Shown one piece after another: positions 5,623 through 61,516 of a stretch of DNA of 64,000 bases. The position numbers and the translations under genes were made by a program. The DNA is from Dimorphilus gyrociliatus (lineage: Eukaryota > Animalia > Annelida): assembly GCA_904063045.1 (NCBI GenBank), contig CAJFCJ010000036.1, positions 62,001 through 126,000 on the forward strand, given 5' to 3'. The number at the start of each line of letters is the position of its first letter. The stretch's first letter is position 1. The notes beneath the pieces were generated by a model that saw only the letters and a list, made by a program, of their open reading frames with translations, did no database searches and was not told the DNA's origin.

Positions 5623-5699
5623 TGCTAAATAATTTTTTAAGTTATTTCTATAAATTAGGCTATATTTTTCTTCTAATTGACTTAATTTCAATGCAAAAA

Positions 5700-6262: not shown

Positions 6263-7249
6263 TATAATATGAATAGACAAATTCTTTCCATTATTCTGAC
6301 ATTCAGAGGCAACCATTAGTGGCGATTTGTAAAAAAATGTAAACAGTGATAGAATCACATATAATTTCATATTCTGTTACAGAGAGAAAAAAAATTGAGC
6401 GTATTTAAATATTAGAAAAATGTACTTTTTTAAAAAACAAAAGATGATTCTTGAAGAATTTTTTCTTTTCTAATAGTTTGTTATGTCTTTCAAATGTTCA
6501 CTAACTATTAGCTATTCATTAATTACTTTTAAATAATTTCCAGTTCAATGCAACAGTATCTATTTTTAAAAAAAAACTACAAGAAATTCTCAATTATTAT
6601 TGTCATTTTCTTACAATCTATTTCAACTTTATCACAAAAGAAAGTAATTTATTAGCATTTCGTCATTTGGGTGATAAGAGGCTGACATGTTTTATAGGTG
6701 AATTGAATATATCAGAGTTGACAGAAAATTTCAAGGCTAAATTTTGGATTGGAAATTATTTGGGAGAATTATCTCTAATTAACATTGTTGTTTAGGGAGA
6801 TCTCAATCAATTACAACCCAAGAAGGATCTTAGAGTGAATGCTTCTTATTTAGGATTACAGTTGGATTGATGATTTCCAATGGGGAATATTCTTTAATCT
6901 ATAGAAGGATCTCTTTACTTGTTGATGCAAAAAAAGATAAAATAAATTTTTTTGGCTTATTCAACTATTATGACATATCCATTCATCAATTATTAATGCA
7001 GCCATTTTGATTTTCACTATTATAGTCCTGAATATTTGAGAATAAAGAGACAAAACAAGACGAAGGAAAGATGATAGAGGGTGCTAAATAATAAAGATTT
7101 ATAGTAATAATCTTTTCTTTGCATAAAGGAATTGTACAAAAGATTGACTTGAAAACTTTTTATTTAAAAATCTTTGAATTTTTTAACGGTTTGCCGTAAA
7201 GATTAAGTTTTATCATAGATAAAAGATAGAGAGAAAGAGAGAAAGAGAG

Positions 7250-8522
7250 AAAGAGAAAGAAACCAACATGAATATTTTTCATTTCTGTTGCCGCCATTTT
7301 TGTTTAAATCAAAATCCATATAGGAAACAAAACGAGTAAATTTGATTTCCTCCACATTACATGTCATTTTAAATTTAATATTTTGTTTACCATTTAGGTT
7401 GTTGTCTTTGTTTCTTTCTAAATGATAAACCATTTCTACTTCCGGTGAAAATAGTCTTTTGACTTTATGCCTAGTTTTAAATATATCTCTCTCTTCGCTA
7501 ACTCTGAAAGAAGAAAGAAGGTAAAGCTGTTCACACTGTCCAACTAGTTTAATGTTACACTAACTGACAATCTCCACCATCTTCAGAGTTTATATGAAAA
7601 ATGAAAGAGTCGGGTTTAACAGAAATTCCTGATATTGTGACAATCGCTTTTTTTGAATCTGTAAAAATACAATAAAAGAATTTAAAGGATATTTAATAAT
7701 ATTTGAAAAAGTTCACTTTTATCGACAATTACAACTGGAAATTTCATCTTTTCTTCATGTTTGTCCAATTGGTCAATACATTTAACCGTAATATCTGTTG
7801 TCAAAGTTCCTTCAACATTTGCAGCATTAAATGATAGAGTTAAACTTTCTCGATTCAGAACTGTATGATTCCTTTTCATTGTTGAAATAAGGGATTTATC
7901 TTCCATGTGAACGCTGCACAAAGCAGAACCTCTGAATGCGTCAACAGATACTTTCAAAGGTCTATGATTAGCTGACATATCGGGATATACAAAACCAGGA
8001 AATGTAAAGGTTGATACTAGTGCTTCAGATTTTGTTACTAAAAAACAATCCAATGTATTTATGAGATGAGACTAAACTGTTTTTTATTACCATTATTATC
8101 ATCATCAATAACTTTAAAATTCTGTTCAACTGTTCCAATTACTGGGCATACCAATTTCATCTTGTATTCATGATCTCCAGAGAAAACATCGTCATTTTCC
8201 GCCTTTACTCTTAAACTAATCGTATTATCTGTATATCGAACTTCATGTGTGACTGAATTAGATTTTGGGCTAATAGAGACCTCCCTAAAATCCAATTTGG
8301 CTATTTATGAATATGAAAAATAGACATATAAAAGATAACTTACGTGCATTCAGAAGTTCTTTTCTTTTCCAAATAACAAGCGAGAATAGATAAACGTTCA
8401 TTTTCATACATTTCATCCAGAAATGTACAAAATGAATCATCATTTTTAATGACACTCACTTTGGCCGAAATGGAAGAGAAGTACAGAAAAAGTAGACAAA
8501 AATTTGTAAATTTCATCATCAA
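7250..8522 (-). CDS. Multi-exon secreted/surface protein with divergent cadherin-like beta-sandwich repeats
   Basis: Signal-peptide-like MMMKFTNFCLLFLYFSSISA, then exons ending in cadherin-like linkers (FKVIDDDNNG, VVIVDKSE, YMDFDLNKNG). Exon chain only partly resolved; the 3' end is uncertain. Confidence 0.45.
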
Positions 8523-9039
8523 ACAAAGTCAAATTTACAACTGAAACGCTTCAAGACAGAAATTGTATTTACAGAATGGTTAATATGTTGGAATTTCCAA
8601 TAGCGGTTTTTCGAAAACGAGACGATTGTTGCTATGGAATTATCAATATTTGCTCCATTTCTCGAATACGCTATCAGTTTACTTTAGCTTTCGGCTCATT
8701 TGCAATTTATGAGTTTGTTTGATTTTATTTTGCATTTTTATGTGAATTGACAAAACAGTCAGAAAAAAGATCAAAAAAAGTAAAAAATTCTTTAAAGTGT
8801 TTAATGATTCTCCTTTACAAATATTATAAAATCTACTTCCCACCCTTTCATTCAAACAATATGTTAGAGAACTTCCAGATCTCTAGAGTTAAATGTGATA
8901 TTACAGTTGGGGGTCATACACATACATATATATAAACATGTCTTTATGCATACTATGTATTAAATCTCGTGTAATACGCTACGAGATTGAATCTAATACC
9001 AATTAGTAGTCAATTAGAATACAGCAACCGTTTGATATG

Positions 9040-13003: not shown

Positions 13004-15155
13004 TCAGAATTTACATTCTCGAAAAAATAATACAAAAATAATAGAAATAGCAATTAATTGAAATTTATAGGTAGTTTTTCCAACTCCTGTCTTGCCATCC
13101 AATTCCCAAGCATTGCATTTGTCTCCTTTACAGCATTTTACGCACTCTGTCTTTCCATCTGCAGTCTTACAATTTTCATTTATTGTTTCTGAAGTGCAAG
13201 TTTCATTTGAACAGCCTCTGGCATATTATAATTTATTTGAGGTTTCAATTCTATATGCCCAACAATCTCCAATGGAATAACTAGTAATTCTCATTTTATC
13301 TGTATTATTGTTGGTACTGGAAATTTCATCTCCACAATCAGTTTGATTTCCTTTACATTCATAGCATTTTTCTAAAGAAATTGTACAACATATTATAATA
13401 AGAATAGATATGATATAGACTAATACTACTTACGAGCACATTCCCTATTATAATTCATCAAGTGGAAATCAGTTTTACATTCAGTGCAAATACGTCCATT
13501 AATGCACATGGAGCATTTAGTTATTGAACATGCTATGCACTCTTCTCCATCATCGCTTAAAGAATAACCAGCAGTACATGAATTGCAAACAGTCTTTCTA
13601 TTCAATTGGATCATAGAAATAACCAGAATTACATTGTTGATCATCACATTTAGCAATTCCATTAACACTACATTTTTTACAATTTGGATCACATCCTGTA
13701 AATATTTAAACACTCAAAAAAGGTGAAGTCATTAACACAATACTTACTTTCACAGAAACCAGGATTAGTGGATTTGTTTATTCTGTAACCAATTTTACAT
13801 ATTTGTGGTATAAGTACATTGGATGAAGGTGTTTGATATGAATATCTTGCTACTCCATCTCCAGGGCAAGGCAGACAAGTTCCCTCAGTTCTGTGTCTAA
13901 TGAAGCATTCTTTGCAACCATCAGATATACAATATTGATCATTTAAACAAACAGGACAGTTTGCAACACATGCAAGACAGTTTCCACTGTTATCTTTATA
14001 ATAACCTCGATTGCATTTCAAACATTTGAATATTCCTATAATTTGTTGTACACATATTTCACAATTGGCAATAGAACAGGAATCACAGCTGAAATCAGAA
14101 TCTTTCAAAGCCCCTGAACTGCATCCCAAAGAGAGGCATATAGCATTATTTTGATTTTCAGGATCAACTCTGCATTCACCACAATTGTATGGACATTGTA
14201 TACATGTTCCAGCATTATTAAGAGCATACCTTGATGAACATTCAGTGCACTTATTAACTGTGGATGGTGATGAAGTTACATCAAGAGTACATGATTTACA
14301 TCCAGTCTGGCATTGATGACATTTTGATGCTGATGAGGGGGAAGCAGGCTCAAGAGCCCAACCAGAATTGCATTCTATACATTCTGAAGCAGTTGTTGAC
14401 CCAGTTGGGCTATTGTATTCTTTACAATTAGCAATGGCTTCACCCCCACCATTTGTATTAATTATGCACTGTGTTTTTCCCTGTGGCTGATAATTAGCTA
14501 AACATTCTGAACATGTACAAACATCATTGACCAACTTGAAAATTTTACAGTTTGGAATTTGATCTAAAGAACAAATAACACAGCCATTTGAATTAGAGTT
14601 CAATAAGGTGTTATTTGAACATGTGCATTCACATTCATTTCCTGAATTCAATACTGCTGTTCCACCAGTACATGTTATTTCATTTTGACAATTAATACAT
14701 TGAATATAGCTTGTCCGTTCATAAGGAGGTAAACATTCTACACAGAGACAGCCACCATCAAAGAACTCAAAGGTTTTACATTCTGGAATTTGAGCTAAAG
14801 AACAATCAAGACAGCCATTTGAATTAGGGTTCAATACATCCTTATTTAAACATGTGCATTCACATATATCTCCTTCAGAATTTAGTTTATGTATTCCATT
14901 GTCACATTGTCCACAAGAAAGGCACGATTGACCATCTTTAGAAACTATTTTACCATTACTGCATTCCTTACATACTGAAATATATTCTCCTTCTGCTAAT
15001 TTTAGTGTGTATTCATTACAATCTGGTATATCTGTAATTTCCATACATCCTACAGTAACCGGATGTTTGAGGTAATGTTTACCTAAACTATCAGGACTGC
15101 ATCTCCCACATATACATACTCCATTGAATTCAACAGCAAATGAACAATGTGACAT
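13004..15155 (-). pseudogene. CXXC-rich (furin-like/VSP-like repeat) surface protein with C-terminal Ly6/uPAR-like domain and hydrophobic tail; disrupted
   Basis: 488-aa Cys-rich ORF with an internal ~80-aa duplication (CECTC..LN.NSNGC..CSL.QIP.CK.F). The last exon reads KCYEC...ARGC...CVKCCKGDKCN plus LIAISIIFVLFF. In-frame TAA at 13226-13228 and a stop/frameshift near 13600. The 5' end was not found. Confidence 0.75.
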
Positions 15156-31778: not shown

Positions 31779-33130
31779 ATGGAACTGGAACAGAGGAAGT
31801 TCGTTATTAATTCGGAGGAAATTTTTGAAATGGAAAGAAAGACACTTCTTCCGTGTTCTGTTTGCGGTAGTCCTTCTACGGGGTAAATATTACTATATAT
31901 TTAGATAGTGACCTACTTATTGAGAGATTTCAATCAACCTTAATCAGATGCCATTATGGTGTGTTCACCTGCGAAGCGTGTAAAGTGTTCTTTAAAAGAA
32001 GTGCGAAAAAACACCATCTCTACAAGTGTAAGAGAAGAAAAAACTGCAATCCGGATAGAGACGGAATTTTCGCTTGCCGCTATTGCAGATTTAATAAGTG
32101 TTTAGGCGTTGGAATGTCATTAAATTACATAAGACACGGGCGTTACTCTCGCGAGAAGAAACAGGTAACTTGTGAAAGAATAGCGGAAGTTACAGAAAAG
32201 AAGAATATGATGATGTGTTCTATACCAGCTTTGCCTAATTTTACGGATGCTGATGAAATATTGATGGGATGCTGCAATATTATATCAGATATTCAAAACA
32301 TCGACTGGGAGAAGGATTTCCCTCATTTAGACAGTCTTCTCCAAGCTGCAAAAGAAGGAATTAACAGTATCTCTTATCCTTTGGAACAGTATCATGATAT
32401 CTTCTGTCTATCAGGATTAGAGGTAGACAATAGAAGACAATTCTCTGGATCCGTTCAACAAATCATTGAATACAATGTTAAAAGATGGACGAAGTATTCA
32501 AGAAAAATACCAGGATTACACGATCTATCAGAGGATGAAATTTTCAGCCATCTTTGCAGCCATAGCGACTTAATTTACGTCACTATTGTAGCATTTAATA
32601 TCCATAGATGGAGCAAAGAAGACCTTACGTTAACGCTCAATAATCAAAGTATACTTGTATCTCGTAGATCAATAGATTATCTTCTAGATAAGAGAGATTC
32701 AAAGATGAAGATGAACATCTTTGAAAAATTTTCCACATTAAATCCAACATTTGAAGAACTAACTCTTATCATTTTGCTCACCCTATTAAAACCTAATGAC
32801 AAATATCCACAATTTCAACACTACTATGATAAAATCATTCTAGGCTTTACTAGATATTTACAGAATATCCATGGAAACAATTTCATTGGAAGGATGAATG
32901 ACATCGTCAATTTTCTATCATTTATGTCTATGGAAACGTACAACGCGGGGAAATGGAGGCCTACCGTTAAAGACTATTACACAACGATATTCGCTGGCGA
33001 TATAATGAAAGAATTTTGGTTTCACCCTACCATTTCAAAACCGGAAGTGAGTATTAATGATCTAAGCCTGTTAACGAATGATCTCATTTTGCTAGATGAA
33101 TATTTAGACGAAAGTATGTGTTTAGATTGA
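31779..33130 (+). CDS. Nuclear hormone receptor (two exons: 31779-31882, 31948-33130)
   Basis: Spliced DBD CSVCGSPSTG/CHYGVFTCEACKVFFKRS..C.....C..CRYCRFNKC; divergent LBD with YSRKIPGLHDLSEDEI and a C-terminal MKEFWF. Confidence 0.93.
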
Positions 33131-35451: not shown

Positions 35452-37093
35452 CAGTACCGGCGGTAAGTCACTGTTACACCTCAAAAAAATAATATTTTCT
35501 TGATTTTTTCTCTTTCCATACTTAAAGAATGAAAATGAAGGATATTATTATATTTAGTAATATTCTTCTTATCATTATAGAGAGAAAATATATGTTTTTC
35601 ATTTCAAATCTCTGAATTATTGATATTTTAATGTGGTAGGCCTATTTTCTATGGGAGCATAAGTACTTGTTACAATCACAAAAATTACTCTAAAAGAATA
35701 TTAAAAGTATTTTTTTGTTCTTATTTTGACTGTTATTTACAGGATATTATATTTTTTAATGTCTTAATAGTTTGTGTGCATACCCTTAGCTTCTACAACT
35801 GCCCTAAGCCTTCTTTCCATTGTCTCATATAAGAATTGAATTTCCAATTCTGAAATTTTATAAAATTCCTCTCTGAACATCTCCCACAGCTCATCCTTGT
35901 TTCTTGGCTTATGTGCCATTAAATGTTTTTTGCATATGCCCCATATTTGCTCAATTATGTTCAGGTCTGGGCTGTTTGCTGGCCATGGATCCAGTGTTTC
36001 TACTCCCTTTCTCTCAAGGTACGCTTTTGTTCTGGCTGCTGTATGACAGCTAGCCCCATCCTGCTGGAAAATTTCCCCTCTCCTATAATTTGGGACAACA
36101 TGACTGCTCAAAATTTTGACATAATCCAAAGCTGTCATGCGATTAGACACTAAAGCTAGGCCCCTATCTCCATTGAACTTAATGTAGCCAAACACCATTA
36201 TATTCCCTCCCCCAAATTTTACTGTTTTTGTGGTATATTTGGGGTCATTCCGTTTACCTGGTGGCCTCCTAACAAACTCCCTTCTCCTAGGATGCAGCTC
36301 AACCTTTGATTCATCAGAAAAAACTACTTTTTTCCAATTTTCAATCCCCCAGTTTTTTCTCTCTCTACAGAACTCTTTCCTACTTATTATCTGCCTCTTA
36401 GATAAAGCAGGTTTTTTGGCTGCAATTCTCCCATTTAAGTTATTTTTTTGTAGTACCTGCTTCACTGTTGTTAGAGAAAGAGATATTGGTATACCAGAAT
36501 TATATAATACCTGATGGGCTGTCCACTTCGGGTTTGATTTAGATGCCCTGGTAATTTGCCTTTCCATCTTTGGTGTCACTTTTTTTGGTCTACCACTTCT
36601 TTGCTTATCTTTTATCATTTTTAGCTCTTCAAATTTATTTTTTATATTTTGTACAGTAGTTGGACTACATTTAAAAAGCTTTGCCACTTTTTGAATGGAC
36701 ATTTCTGGTCTTTGAAGACAATTTAAGATAGAAATTCTTGTTGCTTCAGATAGCTTCACCATTTTTATTTTAAATTTTTCAACTGTTAGATTACACATGT
36801 GCAAACACATAAATGACCTTAAAATCTGGTTAAAAGTGACACTACTCAATGATCAGGGTAAATTTTTTGAACATAACTGATGCTTGTGCTTTTCCATAAG
36901 TAGGCCTATCACATTAAAGTGATCATATTTCTGAGATTTTAAATTAAAAACATATATTTTCTTTCTATAATGATAAGAAGAATATTATTAAATATAATAA
37001 TATCCTTCATTTTCATTCTTTAGGCGCGGAAAGAGAAAAAATCAAGAAAATATTATTTTTTTGAGGTGTAACAGTGACTTACCGCCGGTACTG
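35452..37093 (-). mobile_element. Full-length Tc1-family DNA transposon (1,642 bp)
   Basis: ~200-bp imperfect TIRs starting CAGTACCGGCGGTAAGTCACTG, TA duplications at 35450-35451 and 37094-37095, intact transposase ORF. Confidence 0.96.
35764..36762 (-). CDS. Tc1-like transposase (DD35E)
   Basis: Likely start MVKLSE at 36762; paired HTH, GRPKK, FSDESK, QQDGAS..WPANSPDLNIIE with 35 residues between the second D and the E. Confidence 0.95.
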   Translation of the reverse strand: MVKLSEATRISILNCLQRPEMSIQKVAKLFKCSPTTVQNIKNKFEELKMIKDKQRSGRPKKVTPKMERQITRASKSNPKWTAHQVLYNSGIPISLSLTTVKQVLQKNNLNGRIAAKKPALSKRQIISRKEFCRERKNWGIENWKKVVFSDESKVELHPRRREFVRRPPGKRNDPKYTTKTVKFGGGNIMVFGYIKFNGDRGLALVSNRMTALDYVKILSSHVVPNYRRGEIFQQDGASCHTAARTKAYLERKGVETLDPWPANSPDLNIIEQIWGICKKHLMAHKPRNKDELWEMFREEFYKISELEIQFLYETMERRLRAVVEAKGMHTNY

Positions 37094-40989: not shown

Positions 40990-41996
40990 GCTCTTTTATG
41001 GAAGCTTTTGTATAAATTTGTAATATACCAATTTGGTATGTTATTAAATTCCTCCTCTACTGCCCTCTAATCATCTTTTGTCTGGAAAACATGGGTTTGC
41101 AACCTGTTTTTTAAGTAAGCCCACAAATTTTCAATAATGTTTAATTCTGGGCTTCTGGATGGCCAGTCTTGCAAAACTACTATATTGTTTCTCTCAAGAA
41201 ATGTCCTTGTAGATGCCGATGTATGACATTTGGCACCATCCTGCATAAGCAGGTTGTCTGGCTCAAAAATTGGAAAGAGCTTCTCCTCAATTATTTCTTG
41301 GTATAAATTGCTATCCATATAACCATTATATAATTTTATAGCTCTTGTCCCATCAGCCTTTATACACCCCCATATTGATATTGAAGCATTTGCTGTTTGA
41401 ATGGCTTTTTTTGACTATTTTATTTACAGTTTATGACTCCCCCTATGGACCCAAATTCTCCTTTTTGGATATAACTCAATCGGACTCTCATCAGAAAATA
41501 TAATTTATATCTTGTTGACTCTTATTTAACATAGACAAACAAAAAGATTTTCTATTTCTTGCATGGCAAGGTTTTAGTGCTGGCTTACTTGTTGCAACAT
41601 AGCCTTTAAGGTTGTTTTTTGCAAAATCTTTTTGCATGTTAATAGAGAAATTTTGGAACCTAATCCTGAATGTTCAAGCACATTCCTTGCTGTTAGAAAT
41701 GGATTTCTCTTTGAAATCTGACAAATTTTTCTCTCTTCCCTTTCTGTTAGAATCTTTGGGGTGCATAATTTCGATAAATACTTAATAGTTCCATGTTTCT
41801 CAAACTTTTTTATTATGTAATGGACAGGTCCCTGTGAAATTTTTAATTGTTTTGCAATTTCATTCATTGACATCTTCTCCTTCCTCTTTTCCATCAATAA
41901 TTTTCTCATATCCAAGCTTATTTTTGGCATTTTTAACTTTTTTAAAATTGTTATCCAACTTTGATTCTTGACATAAATTTTTGTGTGGGAAAGCAA
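40990..41996 (-). mobile_element. Degenerate Tc1 element (DD35E type)
   Basis: HTH/NPFLTARNVL, IFSDES, WGCIKADG, QDGAKCH..WPSRSPELNIIE; frameshifted. Confidence 0.88.
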
Positions 41997-43106: not shown

Positions 43107-44009
43107 TTACGAGAGAGTAGCTACAAATATTTTTCCATTCTGAAAGTTTTCTGTAATGGAGGAAAGAAAATTAAAGGAAATTGAAAAATTTTGAATAATC
43201 TTTTCTTTTTACTTTATAACCAAAATTAATGAATTTTGGACATTGAATTTCCTGAGTAATGATATAACCAAGTCTTTTATAGAGGCTCAATTGGTCTCCA
43301 TATTCGGAAAATACAGTTAAAGTCATTTTCTGTGGACGAGATAAGAGATTTTAAAAATAATTAATAAATTAATTAATTAATGACCTTTGCCCCTCTTTGC
43401 TCAGCTATATATTCTGCGAATTTCATTAGATTGAATCCAATACCTTTTCCCCTTAGATTAGAATCTACGACCATAAATTCAAGATATTGATCACTTTCGT
43501 CAGCATATTGATAAATAATTTCCATTTGCCAAAATGTTAATAGTAGTTTTATTGCTCCGAAAAATGGTACAGTTTTAAATACTTCACTTACTGGCAAAGC
43601 TTTTTCCTGCCTGATAAAATTATTTATTAGTTAATTAATTATTCGTTAATTAATCAATAATTAACCTATTGAAATCCTGCATTTTCAAGAAACCTTTGGC
43701 TTTATTGTCTACCTCTGCAACAATAAAATTCCGTTTAGTTATTTCGTCTTGTTCTACAGATTTGAACCAAAAATCCACTATAGTTTCTAAATTATCCTCT
43801 CCAACAATGAAAGAATATTCTTTAGTGTGACCGTACGTTAGATATTTTGCTAATATTCGTGTGTCTTCATTTTTGAATTTTCGAAACTTAACACCATCTA
43901 GAACAGGTTTTGGTCTTTTCGCATTACTTTTAGTCTTTAAAAAGTCTTCGTATTTTGGTAAATAAGCAATTCGTTTACTTCGAATTAACAATCTTGTTAA
44001 ATAGTTCAT
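43107..44009 (-). CDS. GNAT-family acetyltransferase 2 (4 coding exons, same intron positions as GNAT 1)
   Basis: FIVAEVDNKAKG; YLEFMVVDSNLRGKGIGFNLM; LTVFSEYGDQLSLYKRLGY; ends FRMEKIFVATLS*. Confidence 0.88.
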
Positions 44010-45910: not shown

Positions 45911-48900
45911 TCACTTGACTTGTATATTAACTCTCCTTTGTAATATATTCCTTACAAACTTTCCATAAGATAGCATATCCATTCTCTCATTCGACGAGTT
46001 CAATTGTTCAAGCGAGCACGTATCAATTTTAAAATGACGGCCATCATAGAAAATAGATTTTAGAGTTATATCTCCATTTAACGATAATGAATATCGGTGA
46101 CAAAAGCAAATTGCTTGACAAACGTCTTTTAAACATTTTAAATATTTTGAATTTTTAAAGAAATTATTATTCAAATTTAAACTTTCAACATTTTCGCAAT
46201 GGCAAATTAGTCCTTTTTCGCAACGAAATTTTATAAAATTGAAGCTTTTATTAAATAAACTTTCTTTAAAAGTTTCCATAAATTTCTGCCTAGATAAAAA
46301 ATTATTTAAATTTAAAATTTTGAATTTTAAAATGTTTGTCATTTAATTTTACTTTGCAATAAGCGATTTAGATTTTTTAAAGTTGATTAAATCTTTTAAT
46401 TCAGCTGCGGAATAAATGAATGGGTTTAAAAGTGGATTAACTTGAATTAATACAGCTATTATCCAAGTATAGGCTTCTTTGTCAAAATTAATATACACCA
46501 ATGATGAAAATGTACCTGTTTGAGCGAAAATATAAGGAAATGTATAAAATTGACAGAAATATACCCATAAGCGAAATAGGAAGCCAACAACACAAATTTG
46601 TAAATGTCACCATAAAAGCCGATTGAAATAATTTGAAAAAACGGTTTCTTAATTGTTCTTTTGATAGAATTCGCTTAGATTTTAAAATTTCTTTTAAGAT
46701 TAAAAAGTATAAAAAACCATTCAACAGACAGCAAACCAATAAAAAAAGGCCATAAACTAAAAATGAATACCACCATCCTTCACCTTTCGAACTTCTTATG
46801 TGTAGTGAAAAACAAATTGGTGATGTTGCGTAATATCCCTATTTGAAAAACTTATCTTATTTTAAATGGTACAAAATAACAAAAAACAACACTAATTTAT
46901 TTGGAGCTACACAACTGAAAATCCTAAAATTGGCACCATTCCAAAAAGAACCGACAATAACAAACAGGCTATAAATATGAACAAAATTCTTTTAATGTTT
47001 AAAAACTTGCTAAAAGGATGAACTATAATCATATATCTTTCAACCGATACGCATAGGATGCAGAGTGAAGAAAAGCATATTGAAAAACTAGCAAATGCGC
47101 CTATACCTGTACAAATAACACCATTTCTCCATTTATCATCATATTCAATATATACATCTCTGTAAATCTCATCAGCAATTCCCAAAGAAAATAAATACAT
47201 TCCAGTGAATAAATCTCCAATTGATACTCCTATGCTAAATATCTTCTTTTCTCTCTTTCCTTTTGACATATTTATAATTAAAATAAAAATATTCGCAATT
47301 AATGAGAGAATTGCGAATGTCCAAATGATGATTCTAATTGTTCTTGTTCCAAGTAGATCTGTACAAGAATTGATAAGCATTTCACTGGGGAGACAATGTT
47401 TAATGTTGCGCAACAATTTCCATGACAAACAACATAATTTGAAACTTTTCGAGAAAATCTTTTCCACATTTTCAAAATTGTTCATTAATTTTGAATTCAC
47501 CGCATCGCTTCGGATCGACGTTCCGTTCAGATGCAACTCTTTTAGGTTTGGGGTCGACGAGAAAACATTCTCTTCTATTTCCCTTAGCCGGCAGCCTTTC
47601 ATTACAAGAACCTTCAAGGTTTTCACATTCTTCAAAGTCCCCCTCCGCAAACTGACCACTTTCGTATAAGACAAATCCAAGATGGATATTGAAGAATACT
47701 CTGGAAATTCAAAGTCTTCTTCCAACCGCAAAGGATTCCGCCCAATTCTCAGGTGCTGAAGCAACAGCAAACGTCCCTTTAACAGACCCGAAACAGATTC
47801 TATCTTGTTATTTTCAAAATCCAAATAGAAAACGTTGGGGAAAAAGGCGGAAACCTCAAAAGTGGAAAATGACAAACAATTTGTAATTTGCAAGAAGGTC
47901 AAGTGAAACGATTGCGTTGTTGGCTTTGCGAAATCTCTCAAACCGTCTACAATCACTTTCTTATGGTCGAAAATACGAAAATCCCGACTAACAGTAGTAG
48001 TACAGTTCATCACGTAAAATGGCCGACAACTGCAGTTTGTTGCGCAAGTAAACTGATCGAAACAAAACAATTCGTCACTTCCATCCAAACAGTTGACTAT
48101 TCCGTCGCAAACATTCGTAATGTTTATGTAATAATTCTCTTCTTTTGAACATTTAAAAAATCCCCTTGGTTTGTACTTTTCTATAAACAAACAATCGACG
48201 ATTAGACGATTGAATGAAGGAAACGTAGAAGCAAAAGTTAAAACAAAAGCTGAGGAATGTGCGAAAGAAAGGGATAAGAGAATCACTGAACGAAAGAGGG
48301 AAGAAGTGATTGATTGAATGCATAGAGATGAACAGAGAAGACCACTACACCTATCTTACCACAGTTGATCTCATCATCACCGAGTAGGCAATGATTAATA
48401 TTATCACAAACCTGTTGAATTGATATACAATACTTTTCCTGTTTACACTGATACTGTCCAAATGAACAGTTTTTGATATGGGAACAATTTGATAATTGAT
48501 AAAATGGCACATTTGGTTTAGTTTTTATAAATCCCATGGAATCATAATGTAAATTACAATGATATTGTTGAAATTTGATGTGATTATTGTTACATTGATT
48601 ATCGCGATTATCGGTTACGCTGGCACAAACAAAACCTTCGTCCACTTCATTTTTACAGTCGTATTTCAAGTCGCACAAGAGATCTTTATCAATACATTTT
48701 TTATCGCAGTAAAACTGAGTATCTTTAATGCAATCTATTAAAACGAAAAATTTGTTCTTTTCTTATCTATTCATAACGTAAATGGGGTAGAATCTTGTCT
48801 TTACCGAATGTCTCTTCTGAATAGCAAATTTCGTCTGTTTTATCGTAACAATTGTATTCATTATCGCAAAAATTTTTGTCTTCAATGCATTGTCCGTTAT

Positions 48901-51900
48901 CGCATTTCTTATAATTTGGCCTATTCAAAGAGGATATCATCCTCCCTCTGTCCTGACAATCATTCCAAGCTATGAATAGATGAAGATCAACATGTTATTT
49001 TCTCTTTGAACATACAAAGATAAATTCAATACAAACAGCAAAACTCTTCGTCCTGGTTATTCAAACAATCTTTAACAAAATTGCAAACATGTTGAAAGGC
49101 AAGTCTTTGTCCACTGTTACAATGATACTGTTTATCGTAGTTATTGTATCCCATGGTGCAATTGTCTTCATCTTCGCCAGAAGGACAATCGATATAATTA
49201 TTGCACAAATTTATAACATTTATACAAATATTATCTTTTAAACACTTGAACGAATTATTTGAACAGGTGATTTCGATATTCAAATTGAGTATATTATTCA
49301 AATGATTCAACGACTTTAATGAGTAGTATCTACTATTGAACAGTAATATAATTAATATTAATATATTCATATATATTATGTAAATTAATTACTTGATAGA
49401 ATCCATACAAAAATAGAAAGAAAACGTCTTACTTATACAAGTTTCCCTATTATAATTTATGAATGACCGGTATGAATTTCGTTTAGAACGGTCAATTTGT
49501 TTAAATATTGTGCAATCTTCCGGATAGGAAAATATTAAATTATCAGGATTAATTTCAGTTGAAAGCGATTTGTAAAAATTGCAGGGCGTCCTTTAAAAAT
49601 ATAGTAATGGATGTTAAAATAGAAAATAGGCCTAATGTATTACGATTATAAATATAAGTAGTATATTTTACTTATCGTATCTATCAATAAGAGATGTTGT
49701 AAATTCGTAAGGAGTATTGTAAGTAGTTAATTTCACGGAGACGTTTCTCGAATTCAATTTATCTTTATAATCTTGATAGGAGAGATAGGAAAGGTTTGAA
49801 TTATAAATTCTTATAGGCCTAATATATTAATATCATATTTACACGTAATAAATGAAAATTTATTTTGCAGTTTATAATGATTTGCAAAAAATTCAGAAAT
49901 TGCAAAAAATTTTTTCTCTACGTTATGAATAGAGAAATTAGGAATATTCAAAGATAATTTTGAACAGATCTTGTCTATTTCATAAATATTTATTCTCCTT
50001 GTACTTTGGAATAAATAATAACAACTTCCGTAGAATGAAAAGGAATTTTTGTATGAACAATGTTTTGAATTCGAATGGGTGCATTCAATTAAATAGTCTA
50101 TCTGTTTTCTTTCCTTTGAAAAGTATTTCAAGAAGTCATATTTCTATAGAATGGAGAACACACCAATTGTATTAATTGAAGGAATATTTTGTTTTTGTCT
50201 TTACAATTTTCCATGGTGGAGTTGCTATAAAGCCATAAGAATTCTTTAAATCTGTACACTCATTTAAACTCGTATTTTCACTCTGACATTCAATGCCAGG
50301 GTGTAGCTGGATTGGTATGAAATACGTATTATCCGCAGCTTCACTGATTAGAGTTCCCGAAGTAAATCCAAAATGGCGGCAAACAACGTCTATTTCTCTC
50401 TTTTTAAGAGAAAATGACCGAATGCTTAACCATATGTAATTTTTAAAAACTTGTAATATGCCGCTAATTTTTTCAATGTTACGTCTAGCCGTTTGTTGAT
50501 GGAGAGCATAAATTGATTTTTTATCGTTTAATAATCTATAGAGATTTTCTAGTTTGTCATCTAAAAATTCGTGTTTACCACATAGAAAATGATTTAGATA
50601 GAAGAAATGAATAAGAACCTTGAACAGAACTGACAGAATCGCATTCAAATTCTACCAAGTAATAAGCATAAATGATATGCTTAAGTTGGCATTCCAGATC
50701 TCGTCTGGTCCAATCGCAATTTATCATATGGAGACTCTTTGCCGAGTACTTAAGCAAATGAAAATTGAATATATTTTTACAGATTCCCACCTGTCCAAAA
50801 CATTATAAAATTTCAAAATTAAGCAGTATTTTAAACGGGAACAAACCGGAAGTGAGAACGGTTTAGGCAAGGGATTTGTATACTTCCCGCTAAATACTTT
50901 ATTAATTCTCTTACAAGCCATATGAAGATATTGTTGGAATACGTCGGAAGACGGAATGACAAATGGAATATTTCCAAAAGTTTTTGAATAGATTGAAATT
51001 GAACGAAAGAAACCTTCAGAGTTTGATAATTCACTTTTTATATAGAAAATCTTATAGGAATAGTCTCCATTTTCATTCATTCGATAAAAGTAGTCTGATT
51101 TGGTAAAATAAATAGGCCTATAATAGTTATTTTCCTTGTTTTTGACAATCTTCTTAGAAGGAGGAGGAAGGAAACTGTTTTTTTTCTCTCCCTCCAACTT
51201 CCGGTTCCTTTTTATTTATTTATATTTTTACCGCGAATTTGCCTATATGTACAGAATAGACTTTGATTATTTCCTTTACGATTTACTATTGTAAAATTGC
51301 CATTTCCGTCAATCGAAATATGAATAGTAGGTTTAAAATTCAAATTTTCGGCTATAAATTCAATTTTGTTGCATAATCTTTCGACAGCATTATGATTAGC
51401 AGCATTGCTAATCAGTACCACATACGAAATTTCTTCATTTCTAAGTATTATTGAGTACAATCCCTGGTTTGAAATTGATTCCACAGCATATAAATCTATT
51501 TATAATTAATGAATGGATTATTGCAAAATTTTGAGATAATCTTGAAAGAAGATTAGTACATGGTGACGTCTTTTTATAACATTTCATACAAAATATTTCT
51601 GAATGATTCTTGTATCGCAATATGTATTTATGTCTAAAAAGTATCAAAATGTTAATTATATTGAAATAAACAAGTTTACAGTAAAAATTTGAAATTGGAA
51701 ATGGTCATTAAATGCTTATGGTATGTAATGATAAAGTAATCGACATCACGTGACCTAGAGAATTAGCTTTTGTAAACTGTTCAATTTTACACCTTCTACA
51801 ATAAATATATAGATAATGTTATTACAAAAAGCAACATTCGATGGTTGAATCCTTGGTAAAATATTCTCCGTATTCGCCTTCGTTTGCTGTTTTTTTTATG

Positions 51901-52297
51901 AATTGAAATAAATTTGATGACGTCATTCGTTGTATAATTGTTTTCATATTTTTTTCATATAAATTGAATTGTACTTACTTAGGCTACTGTTACATGTTTC
52001 GGCTATAAAATGAACGCTATCATAGCCCATTCTAGAACACATATTTTGTAATTTTCTCTTGAATAAAAACGGACTAGGTTCAAAGAAATACGATTTGGTA
52101 TCATTGCCCAGTCGAATTTTCAATTTTCCATAAATCCATAGACGATTCTCTTGAATCGGTTCAAGATGATAATGAATTCTTTCATCATCAACATCAATTG
52201 AAGTTTTAACAATGATTTCATTTTCGGGACAAACACCTATAGTTGTATAGAGTAGTGTTGAAACTATAAAATGGATAAGCAATATTCTATGAGTCAT
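45911..52297 (-). CDS. Receptor A: GRL101/LGR-like (signal peptide, SRCR-like, CTL-like, LDLa repeats, LRR, 7TM, pseudokinase)
   Basis: Signal MTHRILLIHFIVSTLL; SRCR-like VVCRHFGF; CTL-like FYGSCYY; many C..CDG..DC..GEDE..C repeats; LRRs; 7TM with SVERY, CCWLP, NPLLNPFIY; phase-2 intron 46352-46290 joins an in-frame kinase-fold exon. The true 3' end may lie below 45911. Confidence 0.88.
47295..48381 (-). repeat. Left arm of 1,087-bp inverted repeat (last LDLa exons, 179-nt intron, LRRs, start of TM1)
   Basis: Reverse complement of 56162-57248. ORF-track translations are identical in several frames; the only mismatches I found are at 48350 and 48339. Confidence 0.95.
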
Positions 52298-52458
52298 AAC
52301 TTTTTGAAATGAATAATAAATAATGTTCATGAAATGTTGAAATTTCATTACTAAACAAAGAAAGAAGACAATATAAAGACAATATTGAATTACAAAAGAG
52401 AGATGATTTCCTATTTAAATAGTTTTTAACGTTTGTTTATTCCAATAATTTCTTTTGA
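52298..52458. promoter_or_regulatory. Candidate bidirectional promoter/5'UTR interval between receptors A and B
   Basis: Only ~160 bp separate the divergent signal-peptide start codons (52297 on minus, 52459 on plus). Confidence 0.55.
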
Positions 52459-55400
52459 ATGAGCATGATGATTGTATTGTTAAATATTCTCCTTCTACAT
52501 TTATCTTATTGTTTTGTTTTAGATAATGATATTCATAAATATGCGATTCAAAATTGTCCAGAAAATTTTGAAAATTTATCTATAAATATCAATCATTTTC
52601 ATTTATTCAAATATAAAATTCAAATTACTCATAATTCATCAACTTCTGTTTATGGAAGGTTAAGCGTCTATTTTAAACGATTAAACGCTACTTATACTAT
52701 TGCTTTTGCTCCCTTTCTACCAACAAACTATTATAAGAAAATATGCATAAATCTAGGATACGATGATTTTCATTTTCATGCTGAAATTTGTCCTTTATTG
52801 AATGCTAAATGTAGGTCAAAAGAGAATACATAACAGCTTTTACCTTTTGGCATATCTTGCTCTATTAGATGATAATAAACGATTGACGTCGGATATTTTT
52901 ATAAAAAACCAATCGGGGCAGCCATGTTGTTTTTTGTGAATATTTTTGAATTATTTTTTTGAATATATTTTTGGTTTTTCTTTTCCTTTTTCAGCTTTAA
53001 ATATTTATATAGACAATCTACCAAGGTCATGAATCAATTTTGTATAAAATGCTTTAAATCAACAAATCCTTGTTTGTTTCTATTAATGTATCTCCTTGGC
53101 AACTGTATTCACCTAATTTTCTCTTATCTTTTTTCCTCTTTAGATCTCTTTGCGTATAAAATAACTAATAAGATAGACGATGACTATTCAATAATGATTA
53201 GAAGGCGTCTGATAAATTATCAAGTACTCGCCTCAATTGACGACAAGGAGACGCTTTGTAAAAATGTTGAATTTTTCAAGAATACAATGATAAACGTATC
53301 GAAAGAAAGTTTATCTATCAAGTTGAATAATAGCACTAATAGTTCATTGCTAATTGGTGACGTAATTAATCCTAATGACGTCACAATCGCTTGCTCTATA
53401 GTTGATATGAGAGGTATAAATTTAACAAATTTAAAAAATGATTAAGTTTATCCGCCATTTTGGTTTTTCAGATTTTAAAATAAAACATATGGTTTACAAT
53501 TATGCGCAAAATATTGTAAAATATCTCTCCAGTTATATTATACCAATGGTCTACTCGAAAACTTATGGCCATTTTCCCCTAGCGTTTCATTTCGTAACTA
53601 ATCCCCGAAGATATTACTCAATGGTTTGTGCTGAATTGTCAACAATAGTATCACACGTCAGACCTTTGCTTTTGGAAAATATTTGGGAAATTCCAGTAGA
53701 ACATTTCTGTTATTCCAATTAGAACTAGTGCATTTAATTCGTTTTTCATTCTGCTTCCTCGAATAGAAAGAAAATTGCTTTAACGGAATAAATATCAATT
53801 TTCAACAAAAAAAACCGCGTATTATATTCGAAAATTGTACTGGAGAATTGAAATATTTTGGCGGATGTAGCCCTACATTCGAAAAGAAAAGTTACATATT
53901 TTACGTGGTACATTGTAAGTCTATAAAGGAATATTATAAGGAGAACACAATACTTTTAATGAGCGCACATGGCACTTTCCATTCCCTTAATTACTGGGAA
54001 AACAAGGCTGCAAAAATCATTTCAGGGGTTGCTGGAATATTTAAAGGTAACTCCATCTATACTCTATGTCCTTTATATCTCCGAACAAAAGCTGTAAAAC
54101 TCATCTGCCAAGCAATGGGCTTCGAAGATGGAACGTTAATATTCGAACCTGGCTTCGTAAAGATATACGATCCTATCGTCGAATACGGAATTAAATGTTC
54201 CAAAGAGGATAAGACTATAAACGATTGCGAAATTGTCGACAAATGCCCTATGCTTTTTATACCTAATACAATAAAGTTTAGTAGGCCTAACTGAAATCTA
54301 TCTATTAATAGAATTTCTCTTTTAGGGAGTACATTGAATATTTTTGGAAAATTAAAAGCGAAGCAAGAATTTTATGCCACTATTACAAATATACAGGTGC
54401 ATAAATAACTTTCAATTATAAATAGGCCTATATCTACATATATCTTTCTTCAGATTGTAGGACGGAAGAAGCGTTTAAATACGATCATATTTGTTATATA
54501 ATTTATCAGAGTAAAAAATATATTACAGCTAATGAAGCTAATGAAAATTGCCTTAAAAGGAATATGACGTTAGCTAATTTTATGTTTTCAAGACAATTCG
54601 GAGTTCTTCTTACTATCATTAAAATACATAATTTTTTACTAAAAGTTCGTAATAATCTAACTGATTTACCAATAGGAACAATTGTACCCTTTAGTATGGT
54701 TTTCTTTTCACACTTCCATTTTTAAACTAGACCTATATATCTCTTTATTTTTGCTAAATTATAGAATTTCATATGGTGAACAATTCGAGGAATGAAAGTT
54801 TTCGAGTTTCTTCGCAGAATATTCCTATGTTAATTGTTGATAAAATCAAATACGAAATGAGGTTTGTAGACTGGTTCAACCGTCTATTATTCTATTATCG
54901 TTCGTTTATAGGAAACAATTCTGTGATTTACTTTGGACAATAAAAAAAGATGATGCATTATCTTTGTTCCATTCTCAAAATGGCGATTGCTTTAGTTTAG
55001 GTGAAAATTCCGACTTAATTTCCATTAGTGATTATGACATCAGTAGAATGATATATCAAAGTATACCATGCTTTAAAGCCAAATTTAAACATTTCATTTG
55101 TATTGAAAGTTTGTTATTGACAAACAATTTCAAAAAATATATCTAACGTAACATTCTTTTTTTAAGAGCAATTTCATTCCGATATTTATAAATTACGTAA
55201 TACCATCTTAGCGATAAACATTTCAGTTTGTCCTCCGAATTCGTTTTTATGCGTAGAAAATGAAATTTGTACAAATTCCATAAACGTTTGTAACGGATAT
55301 GAAGATTGTCCTTCGGGAGAAGATGAGAAAAATTGTTCATTCGTTCAATTCTTTAAATGTTCAAACGGATATTCAATTGTTTATCAACGAGTTTGCAATT

Positions 55401-58400
55401 TCGTAAACGACTGTCCGGACAATGAGGATGAACTTTTGTGCGGTAGAGGTTTCAAATTTTAATCAGTTCGCGTCGATTGACGATTGCCTAATACATTTCT
55501 TAGAAAGAAAACCTTGCAATAACGACCAATCTTTGTAATTTATCTTCCATAACTTAAACACTTATCCACTACTCAATGTATTCTATTTATAGACAATGCG
55601 AAAATGGACAGTGTATTAAAAATCAGCACTTCTGCGATCAAGAAAAAAATTGTTTTGATTTATCAGATGAAAAATGCTATTTAAACAAAACTGGTAAATA
55701 AATTAAAGGAAAACAACATTCTAAAACAACAAAAAGGGTCTTTTTTTAAAAAAAAATAGTTTGTCAACAATCACCTTCAAATTTATTTTGCGATGGTCGA
55801 TGTATAACTTCACAAGAACAATGTGATTTTAAAGCAGACTGTGCAGACGCTTCTGATGAAATATTTCCAAAATGTCGTGAATACTGCTTTGATGAAAAGT
55901 GGAAAGTGATCACTCAGTTAGTTAAATATAATCAATACTTACATGGAAACAAAATTGAATATTCAAAAATTGAAATCTAGAAAAGGATACTGCATTGCAA
56001 ATTTCACTTCTACAGGAAGATTAACATCTCATTTACATCTATTTGATGAATTATATGGCAATGATTGTCCTCCATGCAAAATCGGACAATACTCTTGTAA
56101 TGTTTTCAAATATTGTATATCTCTTCAACAGATTTGCGATAATATTAATCATTGTTACTTTGGTGATGATGAGATCAACTGTGGTAAGATAGATGTAGTG
56201 GTCCTCTCTGTTCATCTCTATGCATTCAATCAATCACTTCTTCCCTCTTTCGTTCAGTGATTCTCTTATCCCTTTCTTTCGCACATTCCTCAGCTTTTGT
56301 TTTAACTTTTGCTTCTACGTTTCCTTCATTCAATCGTCTAATCGTCGATTGTTTGTTTATAGAAAAGTACAAACCAAGGGGATTTTTTAAATGTTCAAAA
56401 GAAGAGAATTATTACATAAACATTACGAATGTTTGCGACGGAATAGTCAACTGTTTGGATGGAAGTGACGAATTGTTTTGTTTCGATCAGTTTACTTGCG
56501 CAACAAACTGCAGTTGTCGGCCATTTTACGTGATGAACTGTACTACTACTGTTAGTCGGGATTTTCGTATTTTCGACCATAAGAAAGTGATTGTAGACGG
56601 TTTGAGAGATTTCGCAAAGCCAACAACGCAATCGTTTCACTTGACCTTCTTGCAAATTACAAATTGTTTGTCATTTTCCACTTTTGAGGTTTCCGCCTTT
56701 TTCCCCAACGTTTTCTATTTGGATTTTGAAAATAACAAGATAGAATCTGTTTCGGGTCTGTTAAAGGGACGTTTGCTGTTGCTTCAGCACCTGAGAATTG
56801 GGCGGAATCCTTTGCGGTTGGAAGAAGACTTTGAATTTCCAGAGTATTCTTCAATATCCATCTTGGATTTGTCTTATACGAAAGTGGTCAGTTTGCGGAG
56901 GGGGACTTTGAAGAATGTGAAAACCTTGAAGGTTCTTGTAATGAAAGGCTGCCGGCTAAGGGAAATAGAAGAGAATGTTTTCTCGTCGACCCCAAACCTA
57001 AAAGAGTTGCATCTGAACGGAACGTCGATCCGAAGCGATGCGGTGAATTCAAAATTAATGAACAATTTTGAAAATGTGGAAAAGATTTTCTCGAAAAGTT
57101 TCAAATTATGTTGTTTGTCATGGAAATTGTTGCGCAACATTAAACATTGTCTCCCCAGTGAAATGCTTATCAATTCTTGTACAGATCTACTTGGAACAAG
57201 AACAATTAGAATCATCATTTGGACATTCGCAATTCTCTCATTAATTGCAAATTTTTGTAGTTTAGTTTTGATTATGTTACAGGAAGAGACAGATGGGAAA
57301 GTGTTAAGGATTTGTGTATCATTGGGTTATTTATGTACTGGTTCATATCTATTGTTGTTGGGAATTAGTGATGTCATTTTAGAAGGTACATTCGAATCAC
57401 TAACGGATGAATGGAAACGAAGTAGTCTTTGTAAAATATTACAAAGTGTTGCCAATTTTTCTATAGTATTTCCTCAATTATGCTTTCTGGTTGAATTACA
57501 TTTGAATTTTCAAATGACAACGAAATTAGCAATCGAAAGGGGGGATATGAGATATTTAAAGACGTACTCAATTTTTGGAATATTACTTATTTCCATTACT
57601 ATTTGTATTTGTCATAATTTTATATTTTCAGTTAATTTTATTCAAATTTAAATTTATATAAAATATTATAAGCGTTTGTCTTTTTCCCAAATTAAACAGG
57701 TGTCCTATTCCAATCTATGTTTTTTATTTAACCCGATAAAGGAAGAATTTTCCGGCTGGATATTTAATATAATATCAATTCTAGTGTTAAATATTTCATG
57801 TACAACATTAGATGTTTATTTACTATATTCAATATTTAAAAAGAAACTATCAAAAATGAATGAAAAGTCATTAATGTCAAAGAATAAATATCTCAGTATA
57901 AAGCGAGGAAATATTTTAGTCCTCATATTAAAATCTTTATGTATTTTATTTATTTTTTTAATTGGGTTCTTTCTATCCAGTGAAATGGCTAGTTAATTAA
58001 GAGTTTTAATAGTTAAATATTCAAAAATATTTTGTTTTTATTCAAATAGATTACAAGAGACAGTTATATTATTCTTACTGGAATGTTATTGTTTCTCCTA
58101 TCTACTATTCATCCAGTTTTTTTCATAATTGAAAAAATTTCCTTTGTTATTTACCAAAAAGGAATTTTAAATGAATTTAAAAAGTAAAATTTAAACAAAT
58201 TTGTTGTTTTATTAACTAAATCATATTTTGTAATATTTCCTAGAATGAAACTAATGGAAGAATGTAAACAATTGAATTTTACAAAAAGTAAATAACTCTT
58301 TTCTTCTTTCTATCCATCTTTTTGAATATTCAAGACTTTTTTTTTTAGTTTCGGAATTTATTGAAAATAGTAGTAAAAATAATCTCCTGTGCAGTTGTAA

Positions 58401-58778
58401 TCATTCAAAACACGATAATATAAAACTGGAAAACAAATATTTCCCCATTGGAAACGTTCTAAAATGTTCAAAAGATATGGCAAACATTTTAATATTTTGT
58501 CATTTGAATGAAATATCATTGGATGGAAATTTTTCTATGGAATCATTATTTTATTATGTAAACGATTTAAATATATTTGAATATTTAAATTTTATACTGT
58601 TTTCTCCCCATCCTCTAAACAGACAAAGAAATCTGGCAAAAGATTGATTCATGAATATTCAATCGAATTTTCAAATTTCAATTATTTATCGAGTTCAAGT
58701 GAACATTTAGACATTCTTTCTTATGGTAAAATGTTTGAAGAAATCATAGAGAAAAATTCCTCTTATTTCATTAAGTAA
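52459..58778 (+). CDS. Receptor B: GRL101/LGR-like paralogue (SRCR-like, CTL-like, LDLa, LRR, divergent 7TM, pseudokinase)
   Basis: Signal MSMMIVLLNILLLHLSYC; KICINLGY and LICQAMGF modules; CTL-like exon ~54455; LDLa exons 55240-56183; LRR/TM exon 56363-57630; TM5-7; phase-2 intron 58184-58243 leads into kinase-fold exons (LKCSKD..FCH..SLDG; DILSYGKMF). Confidence 0.86.
56162..57248 (+). repeat. Right arm of 1,087-bp inverted repeat
   Basis: Matches the reverse complement of 47295-48381; mismatches seen at 56193 and 56204; identity stops abruptly after TTAATTGC in TM1. Confidence 0.95.
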
Positions 58779-60710: not shown

Positions 60711-61516
60711 ATTCTTCTTTGATAACCAGATCAGGAGGATCGAGTAGTGGATTCACAGTTTTCCTAAATACTAGAAAGAACGATTATATTTGAGCAACAA
60801 CCTTATCTACTGGATTTAGGGTGAGTACTTTTTAAAATTTACTTTCAAAATTAAATAAATTAATAAACAGGTTCTTATTCATAATTCAAAAGATCATCCG
60901 GAAATGATAGAGAAAGGTATTAAAGTCATCTTTGGAAGGGAATACCTTTTGTCAACAACTTTGGAAGTTACAAACTTTCTTAATAAGCCATATGGAGATT
61001 GTAATCAAGATAGAAACTATAGACTTCTATAGTCATTGTTCTATTGCAATTTTTTTCAAATTATGTAGAAAAGCAATGCAAATGTATTTCACCGGAAATG
61101 AAGAAAAGTATGTATGGTTTATTTGTTTGTTTTTTGGTTATTTTTTTAAATTTAAAGTATTCAAATTAGAAAAGAAAGATACAATTGTTTGTGCTCCATT
61201 CAATTTGGTATGCATTAAGAAGAAAACAGCTATTTATATTGGAAATGAGATATTTACTCATTGCAATTGTCGGAATCAATGCTACAATTCTCAATATCAT
61301 ATTCGTCTTTCGTCGTCTGAATTTCGAAATGATTTGAAGCAAATATTAGGCTCTGAACAGTTTAATCCTGATAATATACTTATTGTTAATGTCTTCTTTT
61401 CATCAATGATCTCCGATATAACCACTGAAAAACCAGGTATGGCTGACTCTTTTGTCAGATGTTGGTGGTGCATTTGGACTTGTTTTGGGTGCTTACTGAA
61501 TTTTTTGATTTTCTAA
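60711..61516 (+). pseudogene. DEG/ENaC (ASIC-like) channel pseudogene, C-terminal half
   Basis: SSGFTVFLN..TGFR/VLIHNSKDHPEMIEKGIKV..NKPYGDC; CNCRNQC..Y..RLSSS; IVNVFF..TEKP; after a frameshift LLSDVGGAFGLVLGA (TM2). In-frame TGA at 60791 and several frameshifts. Confidence 0.8.

Follow-up and report, generated by a model that had tools for sequence, protein, structure and literature searches.

The stretch of DNA studied here (the window, 64,000 nucleotides) originates from the annelid Dimorphilus gyrociliatus (assembly GCA_904063045.1, contig CAJFCJ010000036.1, positions 62,001 to 126,000), and it carries a pair of GRL101-like receptor genes, receptors A and B, which stand head to head with their predicted start codons 110 bp apart. 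Outside one internal block the DNA identity of the two genes is 55-62%, whereas base-by-base alignment demonstrated that this block is 100% identical over 1,044 bp in the two genes and is inverted (arm A on the minus strand, arm B on the plus strand; Table 1). We propose, with a probability of about 0.8, that the block is the product of recurrent interlocus gene conversion between the inverted paralogues, confined to a module of approximately 1 kb.

The block occupies equivalent positions in receptors A and B. It starts 21 nt inside a 179-nt phase-1 intron, contains in this order a part of the intron, the last LDLa repeat, the leucine-rich repeats (LRRs), the hinge and the first half of the first transmembrane segment (TM1), and its borders, in the middle of the intron and in the middle of TM1, coincide with neither exon nor domain limits. 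The initial annotation of this DNA had described a near-identical block at equivalent positions of two diverged paralogues, extending from the last LDLa exons through the 179-nt intron and the LRRs to TM1, and the borders mapped by alignment agree with that description. It had given the length of the repeats as 1,087 bp; repeats of this length are indeed present, inverted and equal to a 1,087-nt short-read contig, but only 1,044 bp of them are perfect, and the remaining 43 nt carry two substitutions. At the outer (TM1) edge the loss of identity is abrupt, with ~60-70% reached only a few bases from 47294/57249. On the inner side there is a shoulder (48339-48436 versus 56107-56204) with ~10 differences in 98 nt (~90%), beyond which the background of 55-62% is reached; this shoulder, a part of which (48389-48432) is also matched by other paralogues at 84-90%, may be an older conversion tract, a consequence of the conservation of the LDLa motif, or both. 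A repeat search between 44 and 60 kb returned a single inverted pair (47164-48435 versus 56108-57379, 1,272 nt, 96%), blastn aligned 47250-48436 with 57293-56108 at 98.0% over 1,189 nt, and a third copy of the block was not found in the 64-kb window, where it is present in two copies only.

Given the background of ~58% identity, it is impossible that 1,044 identical bp arose by chance. The block includes 158 nt of the 179-nt intron as well as all of its synonymous and third codon sites, and all of these are identical between A and B; identity at intron and synonymous sites argues for copying and not for selection on the protein. The duplication itself must be old, since the two genes are collinear on both sides of the block at 55-62% DNA identity and their proteins, 100% identical inside the block, retain 20-35% identity outside it. 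Neither indels nor junction scars were detected in the block between A and B, and both introns are 179 nt long. A tract of about 1 kb, a length typical of conversion, which lies at homologous positions and is free of indels and scars is the expected product of homologous repair. It had been suggested previously that the locus records, at minimum, a very recent gene conversion; the identity of the intron and of the silent sites bears this out, and we infer from the whole pattern that the conversion was probably recurrent and restricted to the module.

The recurrence is the part of this proposal for which a simpler history has to be weighed, namely a single recent replacement, by a lone conversion or by a template-switch partial inverted duplication, with no repeated exchange. 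The perfect identity indicates that the last event was very recent, in keeping with such a replacement, and a further block of the family, described below, shows no GC rise and could be a one-off. However, at ~58% identity the flanks are too dissimilar for a first conversion to be initiated in copies that diverged long ago. The simplest history would be an island in which exchange never ceased as the remainder of the two genes drifted apart. The position of the tract at exactly homologous sites, without scars, also speaks against a single replacement, and an older and longer tract could account for the 90% shoulder.

The base composition of the block points in the same direction, against a lone event and towards long-term exchange. 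The GC content at third codon positions (GC3) is 0.434 in the block (n = 295), whereas the remainder of A has values of 0.291 and 0.238 and the remainder of B values of 0.263 and 0.223 (Fisher p between 6e-6 and 4e-9 across the A and B comparisons). Furthermore, the GC content of the 179-nt intron, 0.374, is the highest among the ~35 predicted introns, the median of which is ~0.24. No comparable rise was observed in the region from the LDLa repeats to TM1 of three non-converted relatives (from L006 and L001), where the respective GC3 values were 0.289 versus 0.264, 0.337 versus 0.357 and 0.223 versus 0.184. An elevated GC content at silent sites is the footprint that long-acting GC-biased gene conversion would be expected to leave, and we consider it suggestive rather than a proof. 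Taken with the other points, it makes a single replacement a distinctly unlikely account of the locus.

The initial annotation had named the possibility that one of the arms is an assembly artefact. The Logan contigs of a DNA short-read run (X1), which form a k-mer graph independent of the assembly, were used to address the reality of the two arms, and they are connected as expected for a true inverted repeat, in the order outer A, repeat, interior, repeat and outer B (Table 1). It was thus clearly demonstrated that both arms are real, being neither a duplicated nor a collapsed artefact. The opposite case, in which one arm is a false copy or the arms were falsely homogenised, would draw on the fact that long-read assemblies polished with short reads can over-homogenise identical repeats, and on the circumstance that X1 perhaps derives from the same sample as the assembly. 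Nevertheless, the raw short reads yield a graph that can be explained only by two arms, as the interior contig runs into the repeat contig at either end and two different outer contigs emerge from the repeat contig; the depth of the repeat contig is ~3.4 times that of the flanks. RNA contigs of a 2017 run (X2) also fit the block and the junctions of A without differences, and the surroundings of the arms are diverged paralogues, unlike those of a palindromic read artefact. An assembly or polishing error is therefore extremely improbable.

Both receptor genes are transcribed and spliced, as gene-specific RNA contigs without differences were found for each of them in X2. The splice joints recovered from these contigs correspond to correctly oriented GT-AG introns, 49-77 nt in length, namely introns of 49, 77, 70 and 67 nt in receptor A and of 61, 66 and 61 nt in receptor B; the gene models were constrained by these joints, while the upstream exons are predictions, in part supported by RNA. 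The stretch of mRNA which is identical between A and B amounts to ~865 nt.

The arrangement of the arms has a consequence which goes beyond the homogenisation of the module. The interior between them, noted earlier to contain both promoters and both variable ectodomains, holds both 5' gene halves, that is, the two predicted starts and, according to the gene models, the signal peptides and the SRCR-like and LDLa ectodomain exons. The earlier proposal that one crossover between the arms would exchange the ectodomains in frame was confirmed in silico: the flip of 48339-56204 yielded two chimeric coding sequences (CDSs), 1,674 and 1,740 codons long and both free of internal stops. The arms flank the segment and its inversion would change the products into two intact chimeric open reading frames (ORFs); moreover, the arms are well above several hundred bp in length, very highly identical and separated by a modest spacer (1,044 bp, 100% and 7,866 bp, respectively).

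It follows from this geometry that two further readings have to be considered, and the more modest of them is an unprogrammed inversion polymorphism, in which occasional crossovers between the arms would bring about both pairings of ectodomain and seven-transmembrane (7TM) half, either side by side in cultures or wild populations or in alternation over evolution. Perfect inverted identity over 1,044 bp at a distance of 7.9 kb is a good substrate for homologous recombination, both products of the flip are intact ORFs, and conversion and crossover are alternative outcomes of the same intermediates; among inverted duplications of the human genome, F8 int22h, FLNA-EMD and the Y palindromes are examples. 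On the other hand, a single orientation is present in the PacBio-based assembly, and the short-read and RNA contigs fit both orientations equally; in the graph of X1 the 1,087-nt repeat exceeds what the contigs can bridge, which leaves it compatible with either orientation of the interior. We regard such a polymorphism as unlikely. The stronger version, according to which the interior would flip often by homologous recombination and both orientations would occur side by side, be it in culture, within wild populations or even from cell to cell, is, in our estimation, rather improbable. If such flipping did occur, two genes would give four receptor combinations, in which either ectodomain could be joined to a canonical or to a degenerate 7TM half, and the locus would amount to the animal counterpart of a shufflon, one that works without a dedicated recombinase.

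The other reading, which goes back to the candidate invertible cassette of the initial annotation, is a programmed switch of the shufflon or flip-flop type, in which the locus would be built to move the ectodomains between the canonical 7TM of A and the degenerate 7TM of B, at an appreciable frequency and either in the soma or in the germline. Of this proposal the geometry stands: the arms fit and the reading frame is kept in both chimeras. A swap would be consequential, since the activation motifs of the two 7TM halves are not the same, and inverted receptor pairs with identical blocks recur. The machinery, on the other hand, was not found. A Pfam scan of the ORFs between 35.7 and 61.5 kb detected no tyrosine or serine recombinase; apart from receptor domains it gave only GNAT, ASC and the DDE_3 and HTH domains of Tc1/mariner. 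The Tc1/mariner elements, the only mobile ones here, lie 5-10 kb away. Short defined crossover sites were also missing, no other inverted or direct repeat being present in 44-60 kb, and the arms, each 1 kb long, consist of unremarkable coding and intron sequence, with borders that are unrelated to exons or domains. To our knowledge, no programmed DNA rearrangement has been described in annelids. The bacterial systems which the locus resembles, the R64 Rci shufflon, Hin/Gin/Cin and the phase-variable hsdS genes, likewise have inverted repeats within coding sequence and bring variable ends onto constant parts, but they possess short specific sites and a dedicated recombinase nearby, neither of which is present at the receptor locus, and the host here is an animal.

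A second locus of the family bears on this question. The comparison within D. gyrociliatus comprised one extra locus (L006, CAJFCJ010000014.1:354396-376897), reached through the one named relative from this species that the protein searches gave, DgyrCDS9719 (P0017). No repeats were shared between L006 and the window. L006 contains a convergent pair of GRL101-like receptors, and in it an inverted block (7020-8823 versus 20183-18378) of ~1.8 kb with three differences, the flanks of which are 55-58% identical; one edge of the block is sharp and the other decays. The public annotation of L006 is fragmentary, with a 706-aa gene and a 207-aa gene. On the question, raised in the initial annotation, of whether other family pairs have the same layout, L006 shows that an inverted, nearly identical block recurs, but it covers the first ectodomain exons and ~250 bp that precede the putative start codon, and not the LRR core. 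As judged from this layout, a flip at L006 would alter the products by at most three base differences. The arms of L006 hold the putative promoter and the N-terminus, so that a flip would be nearly neutral, yet the same signature is present; its appearance at a place where a switch would be almost without effect argues for generic exchange between neighbouring inverted paralogues. Taking these points together, a programmed switch is scarcely credible.

The sequence of events that we favour, recurrent conversion within the module, could be as follows. A break in one arm would be repaired from the other arm by non-crossover homologous recombination, and the copied tract would be unable to spread, as the homology collapses to ~58% on both sides. 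Long repetition of this exchange may have raised the GC content at the silent sites of the island by GC-biased conversion, and the last conversion would have been recent enough for no differences to have accumulated. Were the same recombination to end in a crossover, the 7.9-kb interior would be inverted and the ectodomains would change places in frame; such an inversion would be a by-product of the layout and not a programmed switch.

Certain points weigh against this proposal or limit it. Conversion is read here from the pattern of identity and not from a tree. The rise of GC3 could reflect an unseen, GC-richer third paralogue which served as the donor of the block. The depth of the repeat contig is ~3.4 times that of its neighbours (393.5 versus 105-135) and not twice, and this ratio could stem from a third copy or from an Illumina GC bias. 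The GC content of the block is 0.38 as compared with 0.29 in the flanks, and a strong GC bias has been reported for Illumina data of D. gyrociliatus (10.1101/2020.05.07.078311); the depth ratio, confounded by the composition of the block and by the bias of the library, at most hints at a third copy and is not firm evidence for it. Finally, an inversion of the interior in addition to conversion would be compatible with all of the data.

Comparable homogenisation has been described in other systems. The head-to-head Hsp70Aa/Ab pair of Drosophila and the human Y palindromes also consist of close inverted copies with near-perfect identity, including silent and non-coding sites, have sharp bounds with diverged sequence, and show an elevated GC content consistent with biased conversion. 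In contrast to these, only an internal module of ~1 kb is homogenised here, in very old paralogues (20-35% protein identity), and the unique interior contains both 5' gene halves, so that a crossover would result in chimeric receptors. The human F8 int22h, FLNA-EMD and IDS/IDS2 repeats resemble the locus in having highly identical inverted arms around a short unique segment, and their arms undergo conversion and, in known cases, inversion. The receptor locus differs from them in that its interior is known in one orientation only, that of the assembly, its arms are 1 kb long as opposed to 10-50 kb, and both inversion products would be intact genes, instead of one being disrupted.

With regard to the receptors themselves, the N-terminal homology is common to A, B and the L006 gene. 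In receptor A the ORF at 46907-48286 has Pfam matches to Ldl_recept_a, LRR_8 and 7tm_1, and its 7TM half (46353-47294, minus strand) has kept the ERY and NPFIY motifs. The LDLa and LRR matches of receptor B are the same as those of A, and SRCR matches were found on both sides (50172-50648, minus strand, and 53848-54294, plus strand). The 7TM half of B (57249-58183, plus strand) has seven hydrophobic segments, with ELH in the place of E/DRY and HPVFF in the place of NPxxY, and a 7tm_1 match was not obtained for receptor B in Pfam; judging from these substitutions, B may be a non-canonical or non-signalling receptor. The cytoplasmic tails (45914-46288, minus strand, and 58351-58778, plus strand), which had been taken for pseudokinases, gave no Pfam kinase match even at E <= 1, so that this label has no support from Pfam here. 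The tails of A and B have scattered motifs in common, e.g. LSYGK.

The architecture of GRL101 of Lymnaea stagnalis and of the GRL101-like or type C LGR proteins, i.e. multiple LDLa repeats, LRRs and a rhodopsin-type 7TM domain in one protein, is complete in receptor A; in receptor B the LDLa and LRR parts are present, and the 7TM part only as seven hydrophobic segments. Additionally, A and B differ from GRL101 by extra SRCR-like and unassigned N-terminal modules and by a long cytoplasmic tail with no Pfam match, and B by the lack of E/DRY and NPxxY. Homologues with a name comprise GRL101 or GRL101-like proteins of Mizuhopecten, Lingula, Haliotis and Priapulus, and a Lingula relative also has a C-type lectin domain. 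None of the relatives which the protein searches recovered exceeds 34% protein identity.

The 179-nt intron is the longest and the most GC-rich intron of both genes; it is pyrimidine-rich and open in the frame of the downstream exon. One RNA contig (48155-48735) retains this intron of A, and another, common to A and B, ends exactly at the acceptor at 48181, which together suggest that both spliced and unspliced transcripts occur. No Rfam match was found in the locus, and the fold of the intron is not unusual (z-score -1.6). In receptor A an alternative splice joint (46837-47106, minus strand) skips 268 nt, compared with 77 nt at the main joint, and shifts the frame; it removes 191 nt of the exon coding for TM2-TM4, at a depth of 2.5 versus 4.4 for the main joint. 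In receptor B two RNA contigs (52850-53453 and 53477-54276, plus strand) are unspliced across the predicted introns 52936-52994 and 53696-53766, with a depth of 8-9, compared with 1-4 in the downstream exons of B. This RNA could represent intron retention, wrong gene models, or another transcript, e.g. one from an opposite-strand upstream start of gene A.

The neighbourhood of the pair contains mobile elements and unrelated genes, which are listed in Table 1 together with the features of the locus. The Tc1/mariner elements comprise an apparently intact transposase ORF and, nearer to the receptors, a broken copy. A nuclear receptor gene is also present, the only named close relatives of which are D. 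gyrociliatus paralogues with 31-62% identity.

Table 1. Features of the receptor A/B locus, short-read contigs covering it and neighbouring genes (positions are those of the window; depths are those of run X1)
Feature	Position or length	Strand	Remarks
Receptor A	45911-52348	-	predicted CDS of ~1,736 aa in 17 exons; ATG at 52348, stop at 45911
Receptor B	52459-58778	+	predicted CDS of ~1,678 aa in 20 exons; ATG at 52459, stop at 58778
Divergent region between the predicted starts	52349-52458		110 bp; presumed bidirectional promoter (predicted ATGs)
Arm A	47295-48338	-	158 nt of intron, last LDLa, LRR domain, hinge, first half of TM1; no differences from arm B
Arm B	56205-57248	+	reverse complement of the arm A block, in receptor B; matched by a short-read contig
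Inner shoulder of arm A	48339-48436	-	end of the LDLa exon before the intron, and the first 21 nt of the latter
Interior	48339-56204		7,866 bp between the perfect arms; both 5' gene halves and the 110-bp divergent intergenic region
179-nt phase-1 intron of A	48181-48359	-	GTAAGA...TTTATAG; twin in B at 56184-56362 (+); 158 of 179 nt within the block
Outer A contig	2,576 nt		depth 108; ends at 47324
Repeat contig	1,087 nt		depth 393.5; 47295-48381 = 56162-57248, no differences
Interior contig	7,840 nt		depth 134.6; 48352-56191, both ends within the repeat
Outer B contig	8,934 nt		depth 105; starts at 57219
Ty3/gypsy-like pol ORFs	3156-5691	-	
Cysteine-rich repeat ORF	13689-15155	-	488 aa
Nuclear receptor	31961-33130	+	
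Tc1/mariner transposase ORF	35764-36849	-	apparently intact; 361 aa, DDE_3 and HTH
Tc1/mariner copy	41067-41996	-	broken
GNAT acetyltransferase exons	43373-44009	-	
ASC/ENaC channel exon	60932-61516	+	

The locus is probably a new example of a known process, gene conversion, in a clean and well-bounded form. Should inversion of the interior prove true, it would mean that the sensor and signalling halves of receptors can be shuffled by simple homologous recombination in an animal. On the reading that we prefer, the pair would represent concerted evolution limited to one module, within a receptor family that is specific to its lineage and belongs to a compact annelid genome, and it would be useful for understanding how conversion islands persist within diverging paralogues. 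It should also be taken as a warning that identity of the LRR core in the GRL101-like family does not indicate recent duplication.

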